A DNA stretch of 59,449 nt, the filler included, from Bipalium vagum (taxonomy: Eukaryota), in NCBI GenBank assembly GCA_037834085.1. It is 3 parts of 3 records of this genome, joined end to end, with 100 filler letters (N's around TTAATTAATTAA, not from the genome) between each part and the next. Parts side by side here need not be neighbours in the genome. Positions count along the whole stretch, not along the records: positions 18,506 to 40,538 come from JBBMKC010227983.1; 2 more parts are not named here. The stretch is one strand, 5' to 3'. Of the stretch, positions 18,506-36,345 are shown in pieces. The stretch's first letter is position 1; each line of letters starts with the position of its first letter. Position numbers and translations under genes: made by a program. Under the pieces are notes generated by a model. It had not been told where the DNA came from and did no database searches. It was given only the letters and a program-made list of their open reading frames with translations.

Positions 18506-19781
18506 AATTTTAAAAAAAATTGTTTACATTGATTAGAATTGACATTTTAAGGGTGGTCAAAAAATTTGCTCATCACTATATTTTATATATTATAAGTAAT
18601 AAAAATTATAATACTATATAATAATAACTTTAATTTATTATTTTTGATGTTATCATATTTATTATTTTATTTGTATATTATATATCATAAAATATTAAAA
18701 AATATTATCTAATAAAAATATTTATTACTTTTGTATCAAAAATTTAAAAAGTGTAGCGCCTTAATTTTTTATCTATCAAAACAGAATCAGCTTTCATAAG
18801 CCAAATAAAAGAAATTTAAAAATCCCTTTTGAAAAAAATCAATGAATAAAATTCCTCAATTATGTAAAAAATTATATAGGCTAAAGGAAAATTGATATTA
18901 CTGTGAAAAACCCAAAACAATACGTTATCTTGTTACACAATAGTTTGAAGTTAAGTCAGTGTGCTGATCAATGTATATCAAACTTTACGGTTATCTAATT
19001 TCATAAAAGAATACTAAACAACGTGTGTACTACAGATTAAAAGAAAAAGATTGGTTTATTTTAAATAAATAAAATCAAATTTTATAAAAAATATATTTAG
19101 CCAAAAATTCACATCCAGCTCTGTTTAATGAAAATTAAATTTAAATATAATTTGCAATCTTCCATAGAAACCACATTTAATGTTAAAAATTAAGGAATTA
19201 AAACAAAAATACGTTTAAATGACTCGATTCTCATAAAAAGTTTGAGAGAAATAAGTTTTACTTCTATTTCTTTATTTTTATAAATATTTACAAATCCTTC
19301 CAAACAAAAAAAAAAGTTTTATTTCTAAAAAATAATAATAAATCTTAATAAAATAAGATAATATAATATTAATCAATTTATGATTACGAAAATAAAGGCA
19401 CATAAGACAATCTGATACTCCAGCCTCAAAACGTCTCACTGCTTAATGTGACATCAAAAAAGGCACATGAAACGTTTGATAATAATAACACGGTTTTCTC
19501 ATAATTAATTTATCGATTAATTTTATCGATTTAATTTATCGATTATATATGCAAATATAAATTTTATTAATTATTTTGTCAATCAAAATAAAATATTATC
19601 GTTATATAATTATTTACAAAAAATGAAAACAATCGATATTAAAAAAATGAATCAATAATAGTTTAAATAGTGGATAAAAGTGAAATAAAATAATAAATAG
19701 AAATTAGTCATAAAACAGTTATCAAATTTTACATTAAATAAATCATATTTTCATTGGTTTAATTAAAATAATGATTTTTAC

Positions 19782-22700
19782 TTGAAAAGAATCGACAACC
19801 AAGGAGAAAGACGACTTGAAAACGTCTTTGACAACAAAAGAACACGTTCCAAATGCTAATTCAACAATGCCTTCATTTTCTAATGAAGCTCCACTGCCTG
19901 CTTTCATGAAAACCATGAAAACATTGCTCCAACCCGATCGGATATTGGTCCAATGGGATTGAACAAGTTGTGCAACACATCGGACAACCATGTCTTCAAC
20001 ATTCCTCGACAAGAAAGCTTTGGTTTCCATAATATTGACAAATGGCCTACACAAATACAAAGTTTTAGTGAGATCAATCTAACAAACCATAAATGAATCA
20101 ATAAATCGGAACCTGAGAAAGTCTTTCTGGAAATGGAAATTAGGAAATTCCCCTTTTTCGATAAATTTCACAGCCAGTTGACGCAATGAGTCTGTTGCGA
20201 ATATGGCAACATCCTCATTCGGTGAAAGGCCAGCATCTGTAAAATGTTCTCCGATCACTTGCCAGACTCGAGACCATTGTAATCTGATACGACCCATATT
20301 GTAATATGAAATTTCCACCAATTTCTGCAGACTAAATATCCGAGGTTGAGGTAATAAAAGCTCATCTCTGCTCACCTGGACATCAAAAATTGAATATTTA
20401 ATGTTAATTATAATATTAAATTATTTTTATTATCATATTTGACTCGTTTGTGTCTATCTGTTAATTGACATTGCCGTAAATTTCTCATTTTCTTAATAGA
20501 TGACAAAAATATAATAATCATTTTATAACAATCATTAAATATCGAAAGATTGATTCTGTTATAATAATCAAAACATGTTGAATGAATGATCAGTTTATTA
20601 TATGCGTAGTGATATTGAAAAAAATATTTTTATTGAAAGCTTAAGAATCTAAAATCAATAAGTCATATTATAATCAATAAATCAACTTCAGTACAACTAT
20701 AAATTTACTACCAATTATCTTAACTTGTTTTATCTTATTTTACTGATCAATTATCTGTGGCATTTAGAGAATATAAAAATATTCATTAAATTTACAAATA
20801 AAATTATAATAATAATAATTATTATATATAAATCATTACAAAGAAAAAAAATAATTATATTTTTAAATATTAGGTTGTCCAGTATGAAATGTCGTATTTT
20901 TAGTAGTCAATAAAATAAGTCATAAAAATCGGGCAAATAAAATTTATTAATTAAAATATTTTCCATTACAGTTTAAACACTTTTGCTAACGAGATAATAA
21001 TTTATTTATTCCATCCTCATAAAATTCCTGACTCTAATTAATATTTTTAAACTTTCTTTTGAAATATGAAAATATTTTAATCAGATAAAGTTAGAAAAAC
21101 TTTTTTGAAATGTCTATTAGAAGTAATTAAAATGATTAAAGCCTTTAAGAGAAACTTTAATATAGATAATTAATTAATATTATAATTAATAATTTGTAAA
21201 AAACTTATCTATATTTCGGGAAAATCATTAGTAGATAAAAAATAATATTACATAAACCTCATTTTGGTTATAAATTAATACGTCAAAAATTATTTATACA
21301 TTCTATGTAAAAAGTGTCTGTTGAATTTAAGTGTCAATTTGCATTGTGAAGAATCGATTTTTTTGTTTTTTAATGATATTCAATCATCTTAACGTTTTAA
21401 AGATCTTCCGACTTCAGTTTTCTTGAATATCTATCCTTTTGTCTTCAGGTATTCTCAAAAAAATAATAAACTTTTCTCAGGATTTTTTTTTCTCGTGATT
21501 AAATTATTTTTAGATTAAGTTTGTCTTGTAAAAACCATTTACTGGACAAAGGTAAAGCCACAAAGTTTTAATAAAAAGAAAAATGGAACATATAGAACTC
21601 ATATATCTTCTCTATATTTTCATAAAAATAAAAATTATTATAAAAATATAATTAATTATAATTAATAATGATATTATCTTTATAGAAGTGCTCTGAAAAT
21701 ATTTCATTGATTTATTAAGTCAATAGGAAAATGTGAAACTTACTTGACACAAAGCTCTCACAAAATCGACAATTGCATCACCATCCAATCTTACAGATCC
21801 AGTAAATACTTTATCAACAGCAACGACAACGCTTTGAGAACCGGTTTCACCCATAACTTCCTGTAAAATAGCTATATTTTTTTGCGTGTCAACCAACAAT
21901 GAGCTCATATTGATTCCAGATATAATGTCAGAATCTCCCCCACTTATACGAGTGTTTCGGTGGGTGTTAACTGGCGCATTAGGTAGATTTTCTGATTTCG
22001 TTAGAAATTTTTTATTTTCATTTGAGTTGATGAAAAGACTCATTTTTTTCGTGAAAATCGTTGATGAATTTTCTGTGGACATTACAAAAAATAGAAATAT
22101 TCCAATAAATTAATAATCAATAAAAGATCAGTGGATAATTTATTTTAATTCAAAAGCTATTTAGAACACACAATCGATCTGTGAATTTATTTTGTACAGA
22201 CATTAAATGTTTGGACTCCGTTTCTCTGACTTAGCATATAATTGCACATTTAAAATCAATATTTAACAAAAACTGAATTTCAATATAATCAATAGTAAAA
22301 AAAATAGTAGATAAATATTGATTATTTTAAAATAAATATTTATACAATTGTTATTAATATATCAATCAATATGGAATATGTCTTCATAAACAAAAATATC
22401 CACGAATTGTAAGAGAATTTCAGAAAATGTGAATGGAATGAGTTTTATTGCAATTGTTGTGAGTAATTTTCAGAAAATGTATCACTGTGACATTATTAAA
22501 AGAGAAAATTAGGTTCATCTACAGACAGCATACAAAAGGACAAATAAATAATTTAACTAATTATTGAGATAAATAAATAATTTATAAACGTTTTACGTTT
22601 TTTTAATTTCAATCAATAAAATTTCGTAAAAATAAAGTTTAAAGTAAAATAAACTATTTATCCATTCAAATTCGATAAATTAATTTTAATAAATTAATAA

Positions 22701-25700
22701 TTGATCACAATTATTATTTTTTAAATTATTTAAAAATTCAATATTTTGGAAAATAAATTAAAATTTGATATTTACAAAAAAATTAAAATATTATTAAATA
22801 TAAAAAATATAAAAATAATAATCTTTAAAAAATTATTTAAAAATGGATTACATTGTAAAAATTTTTAATTTAAATTAGTTGAATAATATAAAATTTAACA
22901 AAAATTTTTTTTTAATTTGAAATTTTTATGATATTTTAAAAAAAATATTTTAAAATGTATTACATTGAAAAAAATTTAATTATTTTTGAATAAGATTATA
23001 AAATAGCAAAAATCGAAATTAATCAAAATTTATTAAGCCTAAAATTAATAAAAAATTTAATAATTTTTAAAGCATAATTAACAAAAATTAAAATATTAAA
23101 GGTAATAAAATATTTTATAATAATAACTATTTACAAAAAATTATTTTTAATTTATTTAAAATTTGACTTTTTAAAAAAAAATTATAACTAAAAAAATCGC
23201 TATTTATCAATAATAGTAATACTTACCCGAAAGTCCTTTTGTATTAGGAGGTCCAGTCCCACCAATCAACTGAGCAGACTCTAATTGAGAGATACAACGA
23301 AGAATTTCAAGCCATGATGCACCAAGATAATTTCCATCAGTGTGAGCAACGGAAATCAATGTCTTGATGGTATCAACATTCTTTGGTTTGATTCCATTAC
23401 TTGAACTTCCAGTAATCAATAAAGTGAATCTTGAAAGTGCCTGTATATATGCATTTCTTTCCAAATCCATTTTGAATATGCAAGCAATTCTTATGGCACA
23501 TCGAATTCCTTCCAAACAGTAACGAGATATTTCCGTATCGTCACAGTCCTGTTAAAATATTGTTACGATCAAATTTCCTCTTTCCATATTGATTATTCCT
23601 TTTTATCAATCTTCACTTATTTTTCAGTTGAATTAATTTCAATTCATCATAAGCAGACTTAATTTATTCACATAAGTTTGTTTATAAATGAAATTAATAA
23701 TCTCCCATAATTACTTGATAAGAAAAAGAAAACTTTTTGAGAATAAATAATAAATTTCGTTCAGGAAAACCATTGGGAATATTTGATAATTCCAAAACTT
23801 GAGATTAAAAGACATTTAGGAAGTTACTTTTGATATTAGAAATTAATTTAATAAATCAATACTTAAGAAATATCAATAAATTAATAGTGACAATGTCTTA
23901 ATAATTATGTTCTTCAATTTTAATTAATTTGTAACAAATTATTTTTAATATATAAAAATAATAAAGCTCTTGTTTAAAATACCAAATATTAATAATAAAT
24001 TTTAATAATGAATCTTAGAAAATAAGAATAATTATTAATAAAAAATGTATAAATAGAAAAATAAAAAAATAATATAATAATTAATTGATACAATAAAATA
24101 GAAAACAGTGAACATTACATTAATTCAACTTGATTTAGAATGATGGAAAAACTACTGAGGTCAAATATTTTGTCTGTTTTATTCTTTTATTGAATATTAT
24201 TTACTCATCATTAATTAATAATAAAAATATAATAATTATTTTTTATTTTTACTTCCACTAAAAATTTAATTTAAAGCAATAATTAAGGATTAATATTGAT
24301 TTTACATTAAAATTACTGTTCATATATTTTTGTTGAAATATTTGGCGGAGGCTTTTATAATTTGAAAAACGAAAAATAGATTATAAATTCAAATAAATTA
24401 TTTTACTCTAAAGCCAAGAATACAAGAAAGCTGATAATTATTTAAAATATTGTTTTAATGTATATATCAAATTTTTATATATAACATTGATTAAAGTAGT
24501 ATTATTGTAAAATTAATCAAATAAGTTAATAATAAGTATCATAATAAAAATTAATTCCCCTGTAACTGCTGAGGAAGTCTGGTAATTCTTCATAATTTTG
24601 TAAAAAATTAGATATTTAGTTTAAATTTTTTGGTTCAAATTTATCAGTAAGAAATTTGAAAAATGATTTTTTTCAAAATAGTAGACTAGTTTAAGCTAAT
24701 CAATACTGTTTTCTTTTTATTTCTATTGATCTTTTTTGTTATACTATTTATTCAGACATTTATTTTTTATGAAATTCAATTTGACTTTATTGTACAAATA
24801 TAATTTTAAAAATGTTAAGATATCATAAAATTATGTAAGATTGACTATATAAATTATTATCAAAAATTAAAATTATCTATATTAAGTACTTATTCATTTA
24901 TTTAATAATAAACATTTTCATTAATTATCTAATATTATCAAATTAAACTATCAATCGTGATCATTATTGAGGAGCACAGGTAATCGTGATGTAAGAAAAT
25001 AATTTTTAATTCAAATATAATAAATCATAACTATTATTTAATAGTATTTTATTATTATTATTATTATTAATTATTATTATTAGTGGTTATTCAATAATAT
25101 TAATAGTAATAATTGATTTAATCAATATTTTAATCTGGTTGTCTGTTAAATTCGATTTAATGATCCAATTTATGATTTAAGAATTACAGAAATTATCTTA
25201 TCAGTTGTGCCAATTTTTTTCATGTTTATTCAAATATATAATCACAATGACTTAGAAATAAAAAAAAGAATAGAGAAAATGTGCTCAAATCATTGTGCAA
25301 CTTGTTAAATTATTTCTAATTTCATAATAAAAATATAAATTCATTATTCGATAATCAAATAAATTATTTTAATCTGAAATCAAAGATATAAAATTGTTTT
25401 TCTGATTTTAAAATCGACAATTATCTTCTAATAATTATTATTTAAAATGAAAATAATCATAAAAATATTAAATATAAATCAATTATGAAATTGTAAAATC
25501 ATTAAATTAATAAAATAATTATCAAAAAATCTATCAGAAATTAAAAATTAATTTATAATAATAATAATCCATAATGATAAATAACAAAGACTTGCCTGCA
25601 ATCCCACACTGAAAGCTGCTAGAAATGGTGTCCAGACAAGTTTGAACATTGGCCTGACGTGTTCGTGATGCGTAGCACTCGTAAAATCCGATTCTACATG

Positions 25701-28286
25701 ACTTATTGATTCGATTAATTCTTTGGCTGTTTTGGCCATTTCTTCCATCTCCATGTTAAACAGCTGCTTGCGCTGCTTTTCGGAAATAATAGATGCTTGC
25801 TTGGTTTCGATATAACTGTTGTGCTTTTTGTCCACAGTTGATTCTTTGATCTTGATCTCATTGCCAGCGATCTCGTCGTAAATGCTTCCCAAATATTCAA
25901 TGTCCAAATCGCCGCTCTCATTGATACCGCGATTCATCTTAATGTACTCTTCTTTGCGCATTCGATTGCGAGATTTGATTTGAGAACTATGCAGATCCGT
26001 TGTCAACATGATGATTGAATAGGCCAGCACGTAGGCTGTGTCGGCCGATTTGAACTGGGAATTTGTTGGATTACATTCACAATAACGAGACGCAAACTTT
26101 TCCATCAATCGATCAATTTTCTGAGCCTCTCCCGGTAATCGAAACCCGGACAGAAATTCCCTTAAGGACGAGACAAACTCACGTCCCGTGAACTCGAATT
26201 GATCCACGAAAGCATACATGACTTCGATGTTGTATTTCTCGTTTTCACCGAGGAAATCGCCGATCGCCGTTTTGTCCAATCTATCATCTTTGTGCAGGAA
26301 CTCCGCCACGTCCTCTACCGACGTTCCCAACAGACTTTGGCTTTGAAGATAGTTGAGTCCTCTTAATGGTTTCTTGTTGAACAAGTTGATTCCGTTTTCG
26401 TACATTTCCTTTTGCTGCTTTCGCGAAGCGAAATGTTCAGGATTATCTATCGAGTTCTGCTGATTTATATATCCCGCAGATGAAGAAGTGCTGCCCACCA
26501 TCACGTTTGTTGACGTCGTATTTGTCATGGAATTGGCCAACGACGATTGAGAGGAACTGTGTGAGTTGACACTGCTCGTACTGCCACCCACCTTTGACAA
26601 ATGATTGGACAATGACGAAGACTTCCCAACACCACCGGATTTTGGAGCAACTCCGCTACCAGTCACACCCTCGTGTCGCTCTTGCTCAACTCCGAAAAAT
26701 GAATGAAGCTCCGGCGGAATGTAAAGCTCACGTGACCATTCCACCATACACTGGAGAATGTGGAACAGGCAATCCAATGCTTTGACGCGAGCCGTTTTGT
26801 TCTGGATTTGATTGGGCGACTCATTCATCTGCCTACCCTGAGCGATTTTTGTCAAATCGTTGACGAGTCGCTCAAAAATATTGGCCGATGACAAATCGCA
26901 ATCGTAATTGACGTAAATATCCACGACGCATTGAGCATTCATACAAATCCGTTTCAAGGCTTCCAACACGAGGTCTTTGTGCACAAACGAGCTTCTCGGT
27001 GATTCAAGAATGTAGAGAAAGATCTCTTTGAAAAACACTTCAGTCTGGCGTTTCAAGTGCTGCTTGAAATTGGAAAGTAACGACAGGAAAATCGATAACG
27101 ATAACTCAAATACTTCCGGGATCGGAGAGACACCGTTTTTTGATAACGAGACGCACAGATACTGCTTAATGGCATTGATAAAAACCTCATTCTGTTTGAA
27201 GACCGGTCCGGAATTCTGCAGAATGTTCAACAGCAATTCCAGAGATAAGATCTTTGATCGTAAATCGTGGGACTTTGGATCAATTGTGCCCTCCGGTAAC
27301 GCTTTCATGGACAGTCGGCACAAACTTCGGAAAACGAGGAAAGCGTCCTTTTGCGTGACGTCGGCGAAACTTTTATTGGATGGCATTAATTGGCTTTCAA
27401 TCATGCTCGGATCCATGGAATATGTCTCCTCGTCAAGAACAGCTTCTCGATCGTCCAATTTACCATTAGTTCTGTCTTCGTTACTGTCCTCATTCAGCTT
27501 GGGTTCCTGATCGCCTCGATTTTGAATCACCTCATCAACCATGCACTGGATAATTGATTTGACCACTTCAATTGATGTTTCCTTGTCCACTTCATCCACA
27601 GCATCTTTAAACTTCTCTTGTTCCGATTCTTCGTCAATTGTCTCACAAACTGGCACTTCGTATTGCTCGATAGTCTTTATCGTTTCCATCTCCATTTTGT
27701 TGAAAATCGAATTGAGCATTTGGGTTAACGTGGCTTTGGCGGTCGTTTGATTGACAGTGTCTTTGCTTGCGAGAAATATGCTGTAGCATGTTCTGACCAT
27801 TGAAATCAATATATTGGAATGGACCTCAAGCTGAGGACTGATTACTATTGTCAAAATCGCTTTGATTATTTGCAATTGTACTGCATCTACTGAATGACCG
27901 TCCTGAAACGCTTCACATATAAAACTAATGATTTTGTCAATTAGCCTTTCATTGGAATCTTTATATAGAGCTGTATTGGAGATATGTCCATATGCAATTA
28001 GTTTTTGCAAACAATCCAATGCAATTACAATTATCGTTTGAGATTTCGATGAAAATGCAATTTCAAATGGCTTAAAATATCTGGGATTACTCATAAATTT
28101 ATCAATGTCAGATTTAACAGGTGGTAACACAGAACTGACACCATTTTCAACAATTTTCTCTTTCAATTCTGATAATACACTGTCACAACATTTTTTCAAT
28201 TCCTGATTATAAGCTTTCTTGATATCTTTATCTTGAAGTATCCTTTCAATTCCCCAAATTAAAAAATTATCTGTATTTGATTGCAT
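19782..28286 (-). CDS. ARFGEF1: Brefeldin A-inhibited ARF guanine-nucleotide exchange factor (BIG1/BIG2, Sec71-like), 3'-incomplete. Exons 28286-25596, 23548-23227, 21991-21744, 20375-20113, 20046-19782 (1263 codons)
   Basis: DCB region ([12 protein letters not shown]), HUS box (YVNYDCD), Sec7 motifs ([14 protein letters not shown]; [15 protein letters not shown]) and HDS motifs ([22 protein letters not shown]; [23 protein letters not shown]; NIRSGW). All splice phases are consistent. The symbol denotes the BIG1/2 co-ortholog. Confidence 0.95.
20870..21030 (-). mobile_element. Mariner 3' end remnant in a BIG intron
   Basis: TIR TTAGGTTGTCCAGTATGAAATGTCG and minus-strand [24 protein letters not shown]. 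Confidence 0.7.
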
Positions 28287-30004: not shown

Positions 30005-30305
30005 TACGAAAAATTAAAGATAATCGTTGAGTCTAACCCATGTCAGAGTGCACAGGAATTGTCTGTAAAGTTTGGTGTCACCAAAAAAACTATTTTAGAT
30101 CATATAAATCAAATGGGAAAGGTGAAAAAAATAGATAAATTGGTTCCTTATGAACTGAATGCAAAACAAAATGAAAATCGTTTGCAAGCCTGTTTGATGT
30201 TCCTTTCTCGTCAAAAACCTGATCAATTTCTAAATCGTATTGTCACTTGTGACGAAAAATGGATAAATATGACAACCGCAAACGTTCTTCACAGTGGTTG
30301 GAGTA
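30005..30305 (+). mobile_element. Mariner internal fragment
   Basis: GKVKKIDKLVPYEL (WVPHEL motif) and FLNRIVTCDEKWI (first catalytic D). Confidence 0.9.
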
Positions 30306-31110
30306 GTCTTTTCATTACCAATCCATCTCAAATTTTCACATTAGCATGTGTTTTGTTCTTAATTTGATTATTTTTGAAGTATCCTACATTTTTAATATCA
30401 AATTTGCAATCAATAGAATTTCTTTTCAATAATAATAACAAAAAGAAAAATGTCCCACCGGTCAATAAAAAACTAAATAAAATCTATGTATATAAATTGT
30501 GTATAAGTCTGCCTTTAAAATTTATTTATATTATATTATATATAATCATAGGGAAATGCAACCTTCAATGAGATATCTTTATGGCAGTCCCTTAAATAAA
30601 ATACAAAAACCATCACTGTAATTTTTATATGTACTTTATGAAATTTTTTCTCTATATATAATTATTATTATCTTCGTCCATTTTCATAGAAAAAATATAA
30701 TAAGTTATTAAATTAATATTTTAATTATTAAATTATTAAATACTTGTACTGATTCATAAGTACAAAGTTGTTGATGAAAATCGAATGAAATTTATCATCA
30801 ATATTTTAAAACATTACTGGTGCACTTTTATCAGAATGAAGTATAATTTGGCACAAAAACATTGCTACCGATATAGATGCAAGTTCGTTTCGGAAGAAGA
30901 TAAATAAACTGCTAACTTCGACCCACCTGATTTGTCCCCAAATTACACTATCCATGTGGTAGGAGGTTAAAGTTGAATCACTGTTTACTCTGATCGTAAT
31001 AATAATAAATAAGAACCGAAGCCCATTCACAGTGTCTGTCAGCAGATTATCAAAAATATTTATATTAGTCACTGACTTTTATTTTTGACACTTTCTGAAA
31101 AATCACAAAA

Positions 31111-34100
31111 ATGATCCGAATTCAACTATCCATTTATGTTAGTTTGATTTTTGCTATTTTATATCCCCTGGCTTGTTCTGTAGAATATTTTATTTACATG
31201 CCAAATACTATTGTTTCTCAAACAACATTTAACGTACCCATTTATTTTTCTCATCCTCCTGCCATTGTTCGGTTTTCCGTTCTGGGTCAAATCGATGCAG
31301 ACGTTCAAATGTTTCTCTTAAAGAACAGATTCAACGAAATTCCACTCCAAATAAACAATATGAACGAAACTTCACCGAAAAACCTGGTTGATATCGAAAT
31401 CAAATTATATTCTTGTAATGATATCGGTAATTGTTATCAAAATCAAAAGACAAAACTGCTTCTTGCAAAAACATATCAAATTCCCGTTTCAACGAAAAAC
31501 CATTTGGTTGTGTTATCTACGTCTCGAGGTTGTTATCAACCTAAGGATATCGTGGGTATTTCGGTTTTTATCAATGATATCTATGAAATTCTAAAAATTG
31601 ATCTGTCTAACAATTCCAGCTTCCAATGGAGAAAAGGCAGATTTCATCAAGGAATTACCAATTATGAAAAATATATTACAAATAATTATTTTTTGATAAT
31701 TGATTTATTTGATAGTAAATATAATCTGATAGCAAACTGGACTTTAAATACAAAGAAAAAATGGTCTTCAATTGAATACAAAATACCAAGTTATCCCAAT
31801 TTTGGAGTATGGAGAGTGGTTTATAGAATTCCAAACAGAAAGGAGAGGGATTATAAGGAATTTAAGGTTCTTTCCAATGAAAACAATCTAATTCATAGTG
31901 ATTCGAAAATCGAAATTAATATTAAATTCGATGATGATATAACAATAGATTCCACATTTGTTAAATTTTTAGTCTGTGCAGAATATTCTCGAACTCGTTC
32001 AATAAAGGGTCAATTTTCTGGCACTGTTTGTTTGAAGAATAATGAAGACGAGCTAAATACTTTAAGACCTTGTTTGAAGTTTGAAGGCTTTTTCAATGGT
32101 CATCATAAGTGTGTTTCAATGAATTTAAAAACGAATGATTTGGATTTAAAAAATGTCACGTATGTCCAAGAGACTAATCGACTAATTATAGAAGTCGAGG
32201 TTATTGATGAATTTTCAAAACAGAGACAAAACTTCCGTTATGTAGGTCCTGCATTGGAAAATAGTAAATATAAAATAGTTTTTTTATCACCTCTTTATTT
32301 TAAATCTATGTTACCTTATTATGGGAAAGTAAAAACTGTGATGCATAATGGAAGACCATTCAAAAATGCTTCCGTTATGATTCAGTGTAACACTGTCAAT
32401 TTTCGATTTAACTGGGGCCACAGTAGTAAGCATATTTCCGATCAAAATGGATTGGTTGAATTTGTTTTATCTTCGCCTCCAAAGGATTTGAGGGTAATAA
32501 CTTGTGATATTGAAGATCAATCGCATATTGAAGAAACATACGGAACACTGAGATCATACCGTCCATCAATAACTCAAACATTGGAGAAATGGAAGTCACA
32601 ATTTCCTCTTTACATTCAGTTAAAAGTTTTAAATCGCACTTTATTAAAAGACAATACCGAAGAGCTTGAACTGGAGTTGCACTCCAATAGGATATTGAAT
32701 GATGATTTAGTGATACTATTAGTTGGAAATGGTCAAATTATAAAATCAAAATACCTTGAGAATAATGAATTACAAAAGATCTCTTGTCAAAATAGAAATG
32801 ACGAATTGGGTCATTATACGTGCGACCCAAATACTGGAAAAATTCAGTGCATGAAAGGTTGGCAAGGTAGTAACTGTCTAATACCAAAATGCCAGGAAAA
32901 TTGTAATTCTGGAATTTGTGTAAATGTCAATTATTGTTTTTGCAAATATGGATGGACTGGAACGTTTTGTGATAAGTGTATTTCTTCAAAGACCTGTGTT
33001 AATGGTTATTGTGTGGAAGGACATGATTGTGTCTGTAAAGCTGGTTGGATTGGATCTAATTGTGACATTGAAGGAACTGAGAGTCATCATGGTAAAAAAG
33101 CAAAATTAAAGGTAAAAAAGTCGATCAAACTTGAAAAACCAAGAACAAAAGTTGTTCCAATTTTTATATCGAATTTTAAATTTAAAATTCCTTTGATGAT
33201 TATACAATCATCAATAATAATACACACAGTTTCTAAGTATCCATCTTCTCTGAAGTTTGATCTGACCCCTGTTCCAATGCACAAAAGATCCTCATTTGAA
33301 ACTAGTGACATCATGTTATCTTCCGCAGATTATATGAAATGTGTTCATATTTATTCTAAAAAATCTCTGGACGATTTAATCAATAATTTAATTACCATTG
33401 ATCCATTATATCTTTTCAATCAAACTAATTTATATAACAAAATAGTTTCAAATCAGTGCATCATGCCATTTCAAAATATAGATAAATTTCTACCCAGCCA
33501 TATAGGTCCAACCAACCTTTTAAATGACAACCAAATTGAAACCTATGACTTTTTGAATGTAATTAAGTCAGTCAATTTATTACCGATTTCAACAATGAAA
33601 ATTGTAAACAGAACGTGTTCCGTTTGGAAATTCCTTACCCAGTATAACAAAACGAACAATTTTCACAGAAACATATTAAAGAAAAAACTCAAAATCCTTG
33701 ATATTACTAATACTATCTCTCCTTTAAATATTTGTGGATGTAATGGAGAATGTGGATTGCAAATGATTAATAATATGAAAGAATTGCGTCCTTTAAATAA
33801 ACCTTATTTACTCTCATCTTTTTGTACCAAACTTTCATTCGTGAAAAATAATTCAATGTTTCTCAACACTCAAAAAGTCAAAGTTAATCCTTCATTTTTG
33901 GTAACAATAACAACAATAGATGAACTAAAGGTACACGAAATTCATCATCAGAAAATTACAATTTTCAATTTGTTAAAGTCAGATTTGGATATACAACTTA
34001 TAACGAAAGTAGAAGACTGTTGTTTGACCAAACCATTGCCGGAAAAAAATCTCATTTTGGTCAAGTCAAATCAGTCTACAGTATTCACTCAAAACATTCA

Positions 34101-36345
34101 ATTTAAGTACTCTGGGTTTTACAGATTATTTCTAATATTTAAAGCTAAACTCTCAAGTGATATCTACCCGGGTTTTGACAATAACAGTACGAATGAAATT
34201 ACACAAACTGAGTCCATCATTTACAATGTGGTGGAAGGAGTTTATCACGAAAAAGCTTTGACTTATCAATTTTGTCAAAACGAAGTCAATGATTCTTTGG
34301 TTAGATTAGATTTCAAAGAAACTGTTCAATCAAACAATTATATTAAGTTGAAGATTTATATTCAAAACAGTTTGGAAACTTTTATAAATTACTTAAAATA
34401 TATATACACAAATGAAAATATCGAAAAAATTGTGGCCTTGACAATTAAGATTTATGAAGTTAATTTAAACAAGTTAATAAAAAATAAAATATACCTTAAT
34501 CAGTCATTAATCAATATTAAAAAGTTCATCCAAACTGAATCCAAAATTCTCAAAAATATAACCAGATTTTTGACTTTGGAAGATGAAATTTCATTGATAA
34601 ATCTCTACTTAGACATTCCTCAATATTTATACAATTTTAAAAGAAAATTGTTCAATTTAATTCGACGAAAATTAACTCTTTCCAAATATAATGCCAGCAA
34701 TTGTTCGATGTATAAATTTAAGATGAACGAAGCAATATTGATAATGTCAATAACATTATCTGAAGAAACTGAACATCTTTATCAAATCAATAGGAAAAAG
34801 ATAGAGCAATTGAAATCATGTCTGTTGAATTTGAATGTTTTATCCAAAGATTATTTTTTTGAAAATATTAATAAAAGGTCTGAAAATATTGATTTACTTG
34901 AAAATTTGATTAAGGAAAAAAGACGCTCGTTGAATATCGATCAGTTGATCTTCTCTTATTTTATCCTTAAAACAAAACCTAATTCAACTTCGATTATTAG
35001 CACCATTTCTAAAATTCTTCTCGACAAATTGAGCAAAAGTCCACAAAACTTATCAAAAAGAAATGTTTTACTACTTTTAAAATTATTCAACGATTATGAA
35101 GAAAAATTTCAATCGAATAATATTCCGGAAAACAGTCAAGTAAAGACAAAGTTTTCAAAAATAATTTCATTACTGTCTCAATCAAAAAAAGTGGACATTG
35201 AATTACCAAAATTTTACGGATGCTCAAACGTTGATGTCAAGGCATGGTTTTATAGCAATAATGCTGGATCAGAAAGTAATGAATTCGATATCGTAGTAAA
35301 ACAAACCAAAACTTCTTGTAATTCAACGTCTTTAACATTGGTCTTTAAGCAAAGTCTAATCAACTACAAATCCTTGACAGTATCATTTCCAACCGGCTGG
35401 ATTTTTGATGAAACTTATAAAGATTCGTTTTCTGGAGAACTTTTAAAATGTAATATTCTCACAAACTTTAACGACAGATTTTTAAGCGTAAAATTAGATT
35501 TGTACCTTTTTACAGAAAAATGTAAATTGAACAAAATCAGTTTGACCATTAAACAATACCAACGAATATCGAATCTGCAACAAAGTTCCTTCATACTGCA
35601 AACAAGAAATAATTTATTTCTTTATAAAAAATTTCAAGTTGAAAGTTGTCCATTTAAGTCGCCATTAAAACAAATAAATAAATTAATTAATTCTCCGAAA
35701 ATCAATAATTTTTTTTGGCTAACAAAAAAATGTGACAATTTCAAATTGATAACAATTAAAATAAACCACACGAGGTTTGTAATCCATCCGAGTTTGGCCG
35801 TCTCTGTTGAAAAGGATGAAACAGGAGTCGAGAGTACAATTTCCGTGTTAAATTTGAGAAATGAAATGGTGGAACTTGATCTTAACAGATCTGTTTTGTG
35901 GTTTTTGAAAAACTTTTACCAACATTTATGTGTCAATGGAAGAATTATTTCCAATTTGTTATTTAAATACCACACTGAACATTCCAAACCGATATCATTT
36001 TGCCAATCTTCTACAACAAGAAAATCCTTAGGTTTCCAGGAATTAATTTGTCAAGGATTTGTTCAAGCTTATTTCATAAAATCAATTGACTTTTCTAAAA
36101 AGACAATAGTATTGAAAACTTTTTCAAACATTTGCTTATTAAATTCAGGATTTAAAGACGAATTTACAATGGATTTATTAGTGGAAAAGTCTTTTCTAAG
36201 CGATTGTCCATTTTTTACCACGATCTTGACAAAAAGGGAAAGTTTGATCTTATTTAGCCCTAGAATTATAAACAGTGAAAGTCTTTTAACCTTGAACGTG
36301 AATGGAGAATTTTTCATAACTAAAATTGGTAACTGGGATTATTAA
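31111..36345 (+). CDS. Secreted alpha-2-macroglobulin/TEP-like protein without thioester, with inserted DSL-EGF-EGF module; single exon, 1744 aa
   Basis: N-terminal hydrophobic signal. MG-domain-like motifs: YFIYMP; STSRGCYQPKDIV (cf. TDKPIYKPGQTV); PNFGVWRV; VCAEYS; YFKSMLPYYGKV..NGRP..SDQNGLVEF; ILLVGNGQII. RBD-like VSFPTGW near the C-terminus. Cys module at aa 559-652. No GCGEQ and no evident TM helix. Confidence 0.85.
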   Translation: MIRIQLSIYVSLIFAILYPLACSVEYFIYMPNTIVSQTTFNVPIYFSHPPAIVRFSVLGQIDADVQMFLLKNRFNEIPLQINNMNETSPKNLVDIEIKLYSCNDIGNCYQNQKTKLLLAKTYQIPVSTKNHLVVLSTSRGCYQPKDIVGISVFINDIYEILKIDLSNNSSFQWRKGRFHQGITNYEKYITNNYFLIIDLFDSKYNLIANWTLNTKKKWSSIEYKIPSYPNFGVWRVVYRIPNRKERDYKEFKVLSNENNLIHSDSKIEINIKFDDDITIDSTFVKFLVCAEYSRTRSIKGQFSGTVCLKNNEDELNTLRPCLKFEGFFNGHHKCVSMNLKTNDLDLKNVTYVQETNRLIIEVEVIDEFSKQRQNFRYVGPALENSKYKIVFLSPLYFKSMLPYYGKVKTVMHNGRPFKNASVMIQCNTVNFRFNWGHSSKHISDQNGLVEFVLSSPPKDLRVITCDIEDQSHIEETYGTLRSYRPSITQTLEKWKSQFPLYIQLKVLNRTLLKDNTEELELELHSNRILNDDLVILLVGNGQIIKSKYLENNELQKISCQNRNDELGHYTCDPNTGKIQCMKGWQGSNCLIPKCQENCNSGICVNVNYCFCKYGWTGTFCDKCISSKTCVNGYCVEGHDCVCKAGWIGSNCDIEGTESHHGKKAKLKVKKSIKLEKPRTKVVPIFISNFKFKIPLMIIQSSIIIHTVSKYPSSLKFDLTPVPMHKRSSFETSDIMLSSADYMKCVHIYSKKSLDDLINNLITIDPLYLFNQTNLYNKIVSNQCIMPFQNIDKFLPSHIGPTNLLNDNQIETYDFLNVIKSVNLLPISTMKIVNRTCSVWKFLTQYNKTNNFHRNILKKKLKILDITNTISPLNICGCNGECGLQMINNMKELRPLNKPYLLSSFCTKLSFVKNNSMFLNTQKVKVNPSFLVTITTIDELKVHEIHHQKITIFNLLKSDLDIQLITKVEDCCLTKPLPEKNLILVKSNQSTVFTQNIQFKYSGFYRLFLIFKAKLSSDIYPGFDNNSTNEITQTESIIYNVVEGVYHEKALTYQFCQNEVNDSLVRLDFKETVQSNNYIKLKIYIQNSLETFINYLKYIYTNENIEKIVALTIKIYEVNLNKLIKNKIYLNQSLINIKKFIQTESKILKNITRFLTLEDEISLINLYLDIPQYLYNFKRKLFNLIRRKLTLSKYNASNCSMYKFKMNEAILIMSITLSEETEHLYQINRKKIEQLKSCLLNLNVLSKDYFFENINKRSENIDLLENLIKEKRRSLNIDQLIFSYFILKTKPNSTSIISTISKILLDKLSKSPQNLSKRNVLLLLKLFNDYEEKFQSNNIPENSQVKTKFSKIISLLSQSKKVDIELPKFYGCSNVDVKAWFYSNNAGSESNEFDIVVKQTKTSCNSTSLTLVFKQSLINYKSLTVSFPTGWIFDETYKDSFSGELLKCNILTNFNDRFLSVKLDLYLFTEKCKLNKISLTIKQYQRISNLQQSSFILQTRNNLFLYKKFQVESCPFKSPLKQINKLINSPKINNFFWLTKKCDNFKLITIKINHTRFVIHPSLAVSVEKDETGVESTISVLNLRNEMVELDLNRSVLWFLKNFYQHLCVNGRIISNLLFKYHTEHSKPISFCQSSTTRKSLGFQELICQGFVQAYFIKSIDFSKKTIVLKTFSNICLLNSGFKDEFTMDLLVEKSFLSDCPFFTTILTKRESLILFSPRIINSESLLTLNVNGEFFITKIGNWDY

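Follow-up and report, generated by a model that had tools for sequence, protein, structure and literature searches.

The stretch of DNA analysed here (the window) comprises 59,449 nucleotides of the Bipalium vagum genome assembly GCA_037834085.1, in three parts joined by filler letters; our analysis was confined to window positions 18506-40538, which come from record JBBMKC010227983.1. On the plus strand of this part lies a single-exon gene whose product is probably a secreted, thioester-less relative of alpha-2-macroglobulin (A2M) and of the thioester-containing proteins (TEPs), with a truncated DSL domain and two EGF repeats of Delta/Jagged type set between its macroglobulin domains MG5 and MG6. 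The features of the gene, all on the plus strand, are the following.

31111..36345 (+): open reading frame of the secreted TEP/A2M-like protein, a single exon of 1744 codons plus stop
31111..31179 (+): signal peptide, about residues 1-23, the sole Kyte-Doolittle window above 1.6
31183..32778 (+): MG1-MG5, residues 25-556 (Pfam MG3 at residues 268-347 and MG4 at residues 393-459; AlphaFold2 (AF2) and Foldseek)
32779..32880 (+): truncated DSL domain, residues 557-590, with four cysteines equivalent to DSL Cys3-Cys6 and including the R-x-D-x-L-G-H-Y segment
32881..32973 (+): short-loop EGF1 of Delta/Jagged (DOS) type, residues 591-621 (Pfam and alignment to ligands)
32974..33069 (+): short-loop EGF2 of Delta/Jagged (DOS) type, residues 622-653 (Pfam and phmmer)
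33070..33162 (+): Lys-rich flexible linker, residues 654-684, without furin motif (AF2 predicted local distance difference test score (pLDDT) 32-41 at residues 656-678)
33163..33795 (+): MG6-like hairpin, residues 685-707, then a low-confidence stretch at the bait position, residues 712-895 (AF2 and family alignment)
33796..34152 (+): A2M/MG7-like beta domain, residues 896-1014 (hhalign E 0.0023, probability 13%; AF2 beta-sandwich, pLDDT 70-79)
34372..35115 (+): all-alpha region of ~250 residues, residues 1088-1335, at the position of the thioester domain and with no thioester motif (low-confidence model)
35185..36342 (+): beta region, residues 1359-1509 (CUB/MG8-like), and mixed C-terminal domain, residues 1519-1744 (AF2, Foldseek and language model)

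The open frame extends far beyond chance, and the gene is real: no stop codon interrupts it where 144 would be expected from composition (29% G+C), and the other two frames across 31111..36345 contain 150 and 180 stops. The 5.2-kb gene has no intron, in contrast to its minus-strand neighbour, a BIG/ARFGEF gene with several. In the AF2 model a helix at residues 2-20 precedes the first MG strand. Beyond the signal peptide, no transmembrane or glycosylphosphatidylinositol-like hydrophobic segment was found (Kyte-Doolittle maximum 1.38 against a threshold of 1.6), which agrees with the membrane anchor having been reported as absent in a first-pass annotation made from the sequence, and no furin-type site (R-x-[KR]-R) occurs in the 1744 residues.

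The module and its scaffold

The first-pass annotation had described a Notch-ligand-like DSL-EGF-EGF module within a secreted A2M/TEP scaffold, and this description held in its essentials. Translation of the frame placed the module at residues 559-652, or nucleotides 32785-33066, as reported, and the signal peptide, the ring of MG domains and a list of module matches led by Jagged all agree with it. Specifically, residues 559-652 contain 16 cysteines in a 4 + 6 + 6 arrangement. The Pfam DSL profile (cut-off 24.2) scored 36.3 bits on the whole protein (E 7e-9) and 39.6 bits when the module was scanned by itself; the match spans profile positions 13-44 of 46, and the first ~12 positions with Cys1 and Cys2 are missing. 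The EGF repeats that follow matched the EGF_DL_JAG and JAG1-like_EGF2 types, EGF_DL_JAG reaching 31 bits on the isolated module (cut-off 27), and are collinear with EGF1-EGF2 of Jagged-1.

When the isolated 107-residue module was used as a phmmer query against all PDB sequences, the DSL-EGF1-EGF2 regions of Jagged-1 and Jagged-2 came first (E 1e-19 to 5e-18), followed by DLL4 and DLL1 (E 1e-15 to 7e-14), with Drosophila Delta and Serrate also among the matches; WIF1 (2e-12), teneurin-2 (2e-10) and then HHIP stood at later ranks. The best matches are thus Delta and Jagged proteins, as had been predicted, and not generic EGF proteins, and the DSL score lies above its cut-off. In the alignment with full-length ligands, the module starts at DSL Cys3, and the last MG5 hairpin replaces Cys1 and Cys2, so that, in line with the earlier description, the last four DSL cysteines are kept and the first disulfide loop is absent. 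Since DSL disulfides pair consecutive cysteines (PMC3415683), the truncated domain should retain two intact disulfide pairs, which also corresponds to what had been proposed. Pfam gave no MNNL match at E up to 1, and MG1-MG5 precede the module instead; the C2/MNNL domain is therefore absent, as stated before.

The flank upstream of the module folds as MG domains according to Pfam, alignment with A2M and structural modelling. Pfam MG4 scored 34 bits (cut-off 24.7) and MG3 21.3 bits, just below its cut-off of 23.1, and human A2M aligned to residues 190-455 (E 6e-7). The AF2 model of residues 1-880, built on 27 family sequences, had a mean pLDDT of 68.6, with MG1-MG5 and the module mostly at 70-90, the hairpin at residues 685-707 modelled confidently and residues 712-880 low. 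Foldseek matched this model to A2ML1, A2M, C3/C3b/C3c, C5, cobra venom factor and CD109 (E 1e-28 to 1e-24, ~550 columns), A2ML1 giving E 1.4e-28 over 553 columns. Both this model and the family alignment show the MG5-like strand that had been noted directly before the module to be the last MG5 hairpin. Where the window protein has its Lys-rich linker, relatives have an acidic or Ser/Thr-rich stretch of low complexity; the low-confidence residues 712-895 would occupy the position of the bait region, and the FPEVW motif conserved in relatives is not recognisable in the window protein.

The C-terminal half can be assigned, with moderate confidence and largely from models, to a degenerate MG7-CUB-TED-MG8-C-terminal array. 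Pfam found no match anywhere after residue 657. Comparison by hhalign of the C-terminal 1100 residues of the window protein and its closest homologue, P0001, with nine relatives recovered the MG7 motif alone, at residues ~896-950 (E 0.0023, probability 13%). The AF2 model of residues 860-1744 showed the TEP-like order beta (residues 919-1014, pLDDT 70-79), beta, ~250 residues of alpha, beta and mixed, and Foldseek aligned it collinearly with the C3b alpha' chain, CD109, A2M and C5 (E 1e-17 to 1e-14, with low template-modelling scores). By language-model features, residues 1020-1744 alone scored 0.92 to a cluster with TED and A2M_recep (+NTR), and the whole protein scored 0.91 to CD109-like, C5, C3 and A2M clusters. 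In addition, G1429-W1430 is invariant across the family alignment.

The thioester motif C-[GA]-E-Q, present in nine relatives, occurs nowhere in the window protein or in P0001, and the position aligned to the G-C-G-E-Q-N-M of the relatives holds neither Cys nor Gln. The segment G-E-C-G-L-Q-M at residues 877-883 was considered as a thioester and rejected, since it precedes MG7 and is not conserved in P0001. Some accepted members of the TEP superfamily are also devoid of a thioester.

Relatives, conservation and neighbourhood

That the protein is a one-off chimera is contradicted by the databases: no fewer than 12 named genera of trematodes and cestodes have macroglobulins with the identical insertion. 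A word-based search brought up one close homologue, P0001 (1734 residues, UniParc only), which shares 41% identity over 97% of the length and has the same architecture; exact-sequence look-up returned no record for the window protein or for P0001. An exhaustive search yielded many proteins of 1700-2130 residues in which the match runs unbroken from the MG domains through the module. Named carriers include the trematodes Calicophoron, Opisthorchis, Schistosoma (several species), Trichobilharzia, Paragonimus, Dicrocoelium and Fasciolopsis and the cestodes Rodentolepis, Taenia, Mesocestoides, Dibothriocephalus and Schistocephalus. Therefore, the earlier statement that canonical TEPs lack such a module stands for C3, A2M and CD109 and fails for trematode and cestode macroglobulins, and similar proteins, whose presence in flatworm databases had been left open, are indeed there under automatic names such as "EGF-like domain-containing protein", "Delta-like protein", "alpha-2-macroglobulin", "CPAMD8" and "Alpha-1-inhibitor 3". 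A profile search with the family alignment added just one generic TEP, its search words apparently having been drawn from the first sequence alone.

In all five relatives scanned, Pfam recognised MG2, MG3, DSL, EGFs, A2M, TED_complement (E 1e-55 to 1e-67) and A2M_recep, with a weak A2M_BRD match in two of the five, and nine relatives carry G-C-G-E-Q-N-M or -L. The four-cysteine DSL, the two EGFs and the linker stand in the same columns throughout the family alignment, after MG5 and before MG6/bait, and both the insertion point and the four-cysteine truncation are identical across the family. In the module tree (98 columns, weakly resolved), 65 non-TEP modules, the named ones of Delta or Jagged type, form a clade that excludes all TEP modules, and the TEP module may have had a single origin. 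The scaffold tree, computed on the MG scaffold with the module left out, recovered cestodes and trematodes each as a supported clade and placed the window protein and P0001 in a third group with Logan/ENA sequences, near the mollusc outgroup.

Segment identities, with Cys-Cys columns removed in the second and third comparisons, were as follows.

Window protein and P0001: DSL 59%, EGF1 65%, EGF2 75%; MG4 66%, MG5 57%; overall 40%; after residue 654, 26-38%
Window protein and eight trematode/cestode proteins: module 45 / 32 / 40%; other segments, TED included, 12-21%
Among the eight trematode/cestode proteins: DSL 52%, EGF1 39%, EGF2 47%; MG7 50%, TED 41%, MG4 27%, MG5 24%

Judged by these alignments, the module is the best-conserved part of the window protein, and the lineage of this protein is one in which the trap machinery has decayed and the arm formed by the module has been kept. 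EGF2 is the most conserved segment relative to P0001 (75%), and within the eight family proteins the DSL is best conserved, with MG7 close behind. The invariant module positions other than cysteine (G-H-Y, two G-W-x-G and several glycines) are typically fold-determining, whereas R562 and D564 vary among family members.

Several further sequences were observed in the course of these searches. The Logan/ENA sequences P0005, P0013, P0041 and P0051 and the UniParc fragment P0010 also have the MG5-DSL junction; P0005 (Logan ERR14224704, 1330 residues), which is Arg-rich and has MG domains, DSL-EGF-EGF, A2M and a weak A2M_recep but neither TED nor thioester, is apparently a further thioester-less version within this family. 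A bivalve TEP from Sinanodonta woodiana (P0040) has an Ig-like insert at residues ~590-700, after a low-complexity stretch at the MG5/MG6 junction, and domain insertion seems to favour this junction. P0008, P0009, P0014, P0017, P0018 and P0023 possess a Cys-containing C-terminal extension of ~200 residues after A2M_recep, with no Pfam match; the language-model search with the C-terminal part of the window protein pointed to a cluster with NTR/C345C domains.

In the neighbourhood, a gene for a BIG/ARFGEF-type Sec7 guanine-nucleotide exchange factor occupies 19743-28286 (-), with ~45-55% identity to BIG1/2 across all bilaterians. Its first exon, 25548-28286 (912 codons), encodes the DCB, HUS and Sec7 domains; further exon-like open reading frames lie at 23207-23515, 21720-22082, 20079-20375 and 19743-20060, and the introns have 17-20% G+C. 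A short open reading frame at 30059-30367 (+) resembles a fragment of a mariner/Tc1 transposase (D-E-K-W-type motif), a resemblance that is unconfirmed, Pfam giving no match for it at E up to 0.01. Reads mapped across the locus at 90% likeness gave nothing but short, AT-rich matches and joints judged spurious, with ~21 letters on their shorter side; none of this is evidence of splicing.

Possible roles of the arm

Taken together, these results make it likely that the locus is a functional intronless gene for a secreted, strongly diverged and thioester-less member of a flatworm-type A2M/TEP subfamily, of which the DSL-EGF-EGF insertion between MG5 and MG6 is the hallmark, and that the arm is a binding site; we use the label flatworm-type because the named carriers of the architecture are trematodes and cestodes. 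In structural terms, the DSL domain and the two EGFs would form a rigid arm projecting from the MG ring beside the bait region. The DSL-EGF1-EGF2 part of Jagged-1 is a near-linear rod (PMC3415683), and this shape, together with 23 disordered linker residues (residues 656-678), suggests that the arm probably projects and that the flexible linker after EGF2 would let the chain return to MG6 beside MG5. The arm may then be the main functional surface of the molecule, a protein-binding site, and, by analogy with thioester-less TEPs such as C5, the protein would act non-covalently as a binder or adaptor and not as a covalent trap.

Several points weigh against this interpretation. The stretch is present in no RNA run, its one occurrence being in a set of contigs of unspecified kind; the geometry of the arm is one that we infer. 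In the scaffold tree, a stem of 2.5 changes per site leads to the window protein and P0001, which fall outside both the cestode and the trematode clade; at this length long-branch effects are likely, and the placement of the window protein is unsafe. The hhalign comparison of the C-terminal 1100 residues with the nine relatives found nothing for TED, and the C-terminal AF2 model is poor (mean pLDDT 47.5); with pLDDT this low and TEPs within the model's input alignment, the TED and MG8 assignments are soft. Furthermore, conservation of small disulfide-rich domains may reflect constraint on the fold and not a binding partner.

It had been suggested that the protein is a soluble Notch modulator, and binding of the arm to Notch (EGF11-12 and neighbours), with the protein serving as a secreted diffusible modulator, a decoy or antagonist or a DOS-type co-ligand, seems unlikely on present comparisons. 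We know of no DSL-domain partner other than Notch, a consideration in its favour, and the closest relatives of the module are by far the Notch-binding DSL-EGF1-EGF2 regions of Jagged and Delta. That no other part of the protein is as well conserved as the module also fits. The Notch-binding face of Jagged-1 consists of F199, R201, R203, D205 and F207 (PMC3415683), for which the window protein has S558, Q560, R562, D564 and L566: two identical, one conservative and two changed. The DSL Cys3-Cys4 segment carrying this face is retained, with R562 and D564 identical and a hydrophobic L566 for F207, and Leu at the F207 position is also seen in two six-cysteine DSL proteins, one of them named delta-like.

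On the other hand, Ser and Gln stand in place of F199 and R201, the residues matching R203 and D205 vary within the family, and Leu replaces F207, whose substitution by Ala abolishes Jagged-1 binding (PMC3888931). The first DSL loop is missing and so is C2/MNNL; as for the latter, substitutions at the C2 calcium site of Jagged-1 abolished activation and left Notch binding intact (PMC3888931). In addition, the P-W pair by which EGF1 packs against EGF2 in Jagged-1 is missing from EGF2 of the window protein, and short Delta/Jagged-type EGFs also occur in teneurins, VWDE-like proteins, WIF1 and HHIP, none of which is a Notch ligand. No Notch sequence was found among the matches scanned, five of the larger multi-EGF ones. 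Lacking C2/MNNL, the first DSL loop and an anchor, the protein cannot be a canonical activating Notch ligand, and a Notch-type EGF array as the partner of the arm is, from these sequence features, a doubtful proposal.

Alternatively, the module might be a structural insert only, like further lineage-specific inserts known from TEPs. It would then be a stiff spacer without external ligand, with a part in shaping or shielding the neighbouring bait region or in oligomerisation. The Ig-like insert of P0040 at the same place implies that the junction tolerates foreign domains, the invariant non-cysteine residues are those typical of fold-determining positions, and the relatives retain a complete protease-trap toolkit. 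However, decay of the trap machinery in the window lineage (thioester gone, TED no longer recognisable from sequence) went together with a module more conserved than any other part, a combination that is hard to explain by service to the bait and thioester alone; we regard a purely structural role as improbable. The probability left over by Notch binding and by a structural role falls to some other partner of the arm.

A broader proposal is that the flatworm macroglobulins as a whole form a second, non-membrane class of Notch-ligand-like proteins presenting a DSL-DOS arm on a TEP scaffold, with the thioester-bearing relatives deposited on surfaces, the window protein acting as a soluble decoy and host Notch a possible target in parasites. 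Within this proposal, covalent deposition on a cell or on a parasite or host surface could anchor the arm, as soluble ligands cannot; we consider the proposal as a whole quite improbable.

Least of all can we credit that the gene is a decaying or non-functional copy such as a processed retrocopy, a very improbable and disfavoured reading for which speak the single 5.2-kb exon beside the intron-bearing BIG/ARFGEF gene, the lost thioester, the strongly diverged C-terminal half and the missing RNA reads, and against which stand 1744 codons free of the 144 stops expected, retention of 16 of 16 module cysteines, a poly(A) trace that was looked for 3' of the stop codon and not seen, and the full-length P0001, 41% identical and of the same architecture, which shows that the divergence occurred under an open frame.

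Comparison with known systems

Few extracellular protein families have been studied as thoroughly as TEPs and Notch ligands, and a DSL module is not known from any TEP that has been solved or described. Our literature search, of incomplete coverage, found no paper describing a macroglobulin with a DSL domain; the DSL-bearing macroglobulin family is apparently undescribed in papers and is present in databases, where automatic annotation has given its members misleading names ("Delta-like protein" and "CPAMD8", for example). A 2017 preprint on comparative genomics of parasitic worms reported the A2M (I39) family in all platyhelminths, with expansion in tapeworms, and mentioned flatworm-specific domain combinations, DSL or EGF not being among those mentioned. 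A survey of Notch genes in Lophotrochozoa described Delta as MNLL + DSL + EGF and left Platyhelminthes outside its ligand tree (PMC8166818), and a study of C3 reported that C3-like genes were lost in Platyhelminthes (PMC8960428).

The architecture itself is thus already in databases, and what is new here is the thioester-less variant of the DSL-bearing TEP subfamily. Macroglobulin and DSL module stand together as a conserved trait of the family, shared by trematodes and cestodes (Schistosoma, Opisthorchis, Paragonimus and Taenia among them), and their union is no accident of a single gene model; in the window lineage the module has even outlasted the thioester machinery. Flatworms of medical importance have this arm in conserved form, and its binding partner lends itself to direct tests. 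If worm or host Notch were bound, this would be a new presentation of a Notch ligand, relevant to parasite-host signalling; if the arm binds a partner other than Notch, it would to our knowledge be the first such DSL partner.

The nearest comparison is with the flatworm macroglobulins themselves. Rodentolepis nana A0A0R3T5V2 ("Delta-like protein"), Schistosoma haematobium XP_012800723.2 ("CPAMD8"), Opisthorchis viverrini OON18030.1 and Paragonimus westermani KAA3677872.1 ("alpha-2-macroglobulin") have the same domain order, insertion and truncation as the window protein, the common order being MG1-MG5, four-cysteine DSL, two short EGFs, linker, MG6/bait and, with moderate confidence for the window protein, MG7, TED and MG8/RBD. 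Overall identity is 16-19%, and the relatives are longer (1900-2130 residues) and have GCGEQNM and Pfam-detectable A2M, TED and A2M_recep, whereas the window protein has 1744 residues and no thioester.

A2M, A2ML1, CD109, C3/C4/C5 and insect TEPs share the MG ring fold and probably the overall domain order with the window protein, and C5 is also devoid of a thioester. None of the solved TEPs has a DSL-EGF insert: C3/C4/C5 carry LNK/ANA inside MG6 and A2M its bait inside MG6, whereas in the window protein the foreign module lies between MG5 and MG6.

On the side of the Notch ligands, Jagged/Serrate and Delta (PDB 2VJ2, 5BO1, 5MW5 and 4XBM) have a homologous DSL Cys3-Cys6 and two short-loop EGFs (E 1e-19), and the window module keeps R203, D205 and G-H-Y of Jagged-1; in contrast to Jagged and Delta, the window protein has no C2/MNNL, no DSL Cys1-Cys2 loop, no further EGFs and no transmembrane segment. 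EGF1 and EGF2 of Jagged and Delta are similar to the DOS motif (PMC3415683). The DOS-motif proteins of C. elegans (OSM-11 family) and the secreted DSL ligands are, like the window protein, secreted and equipped with a partial Notch-ligand toolkit; these proteins are small, unlike the window protein, and the likeness to them considered here is one of EGF type.

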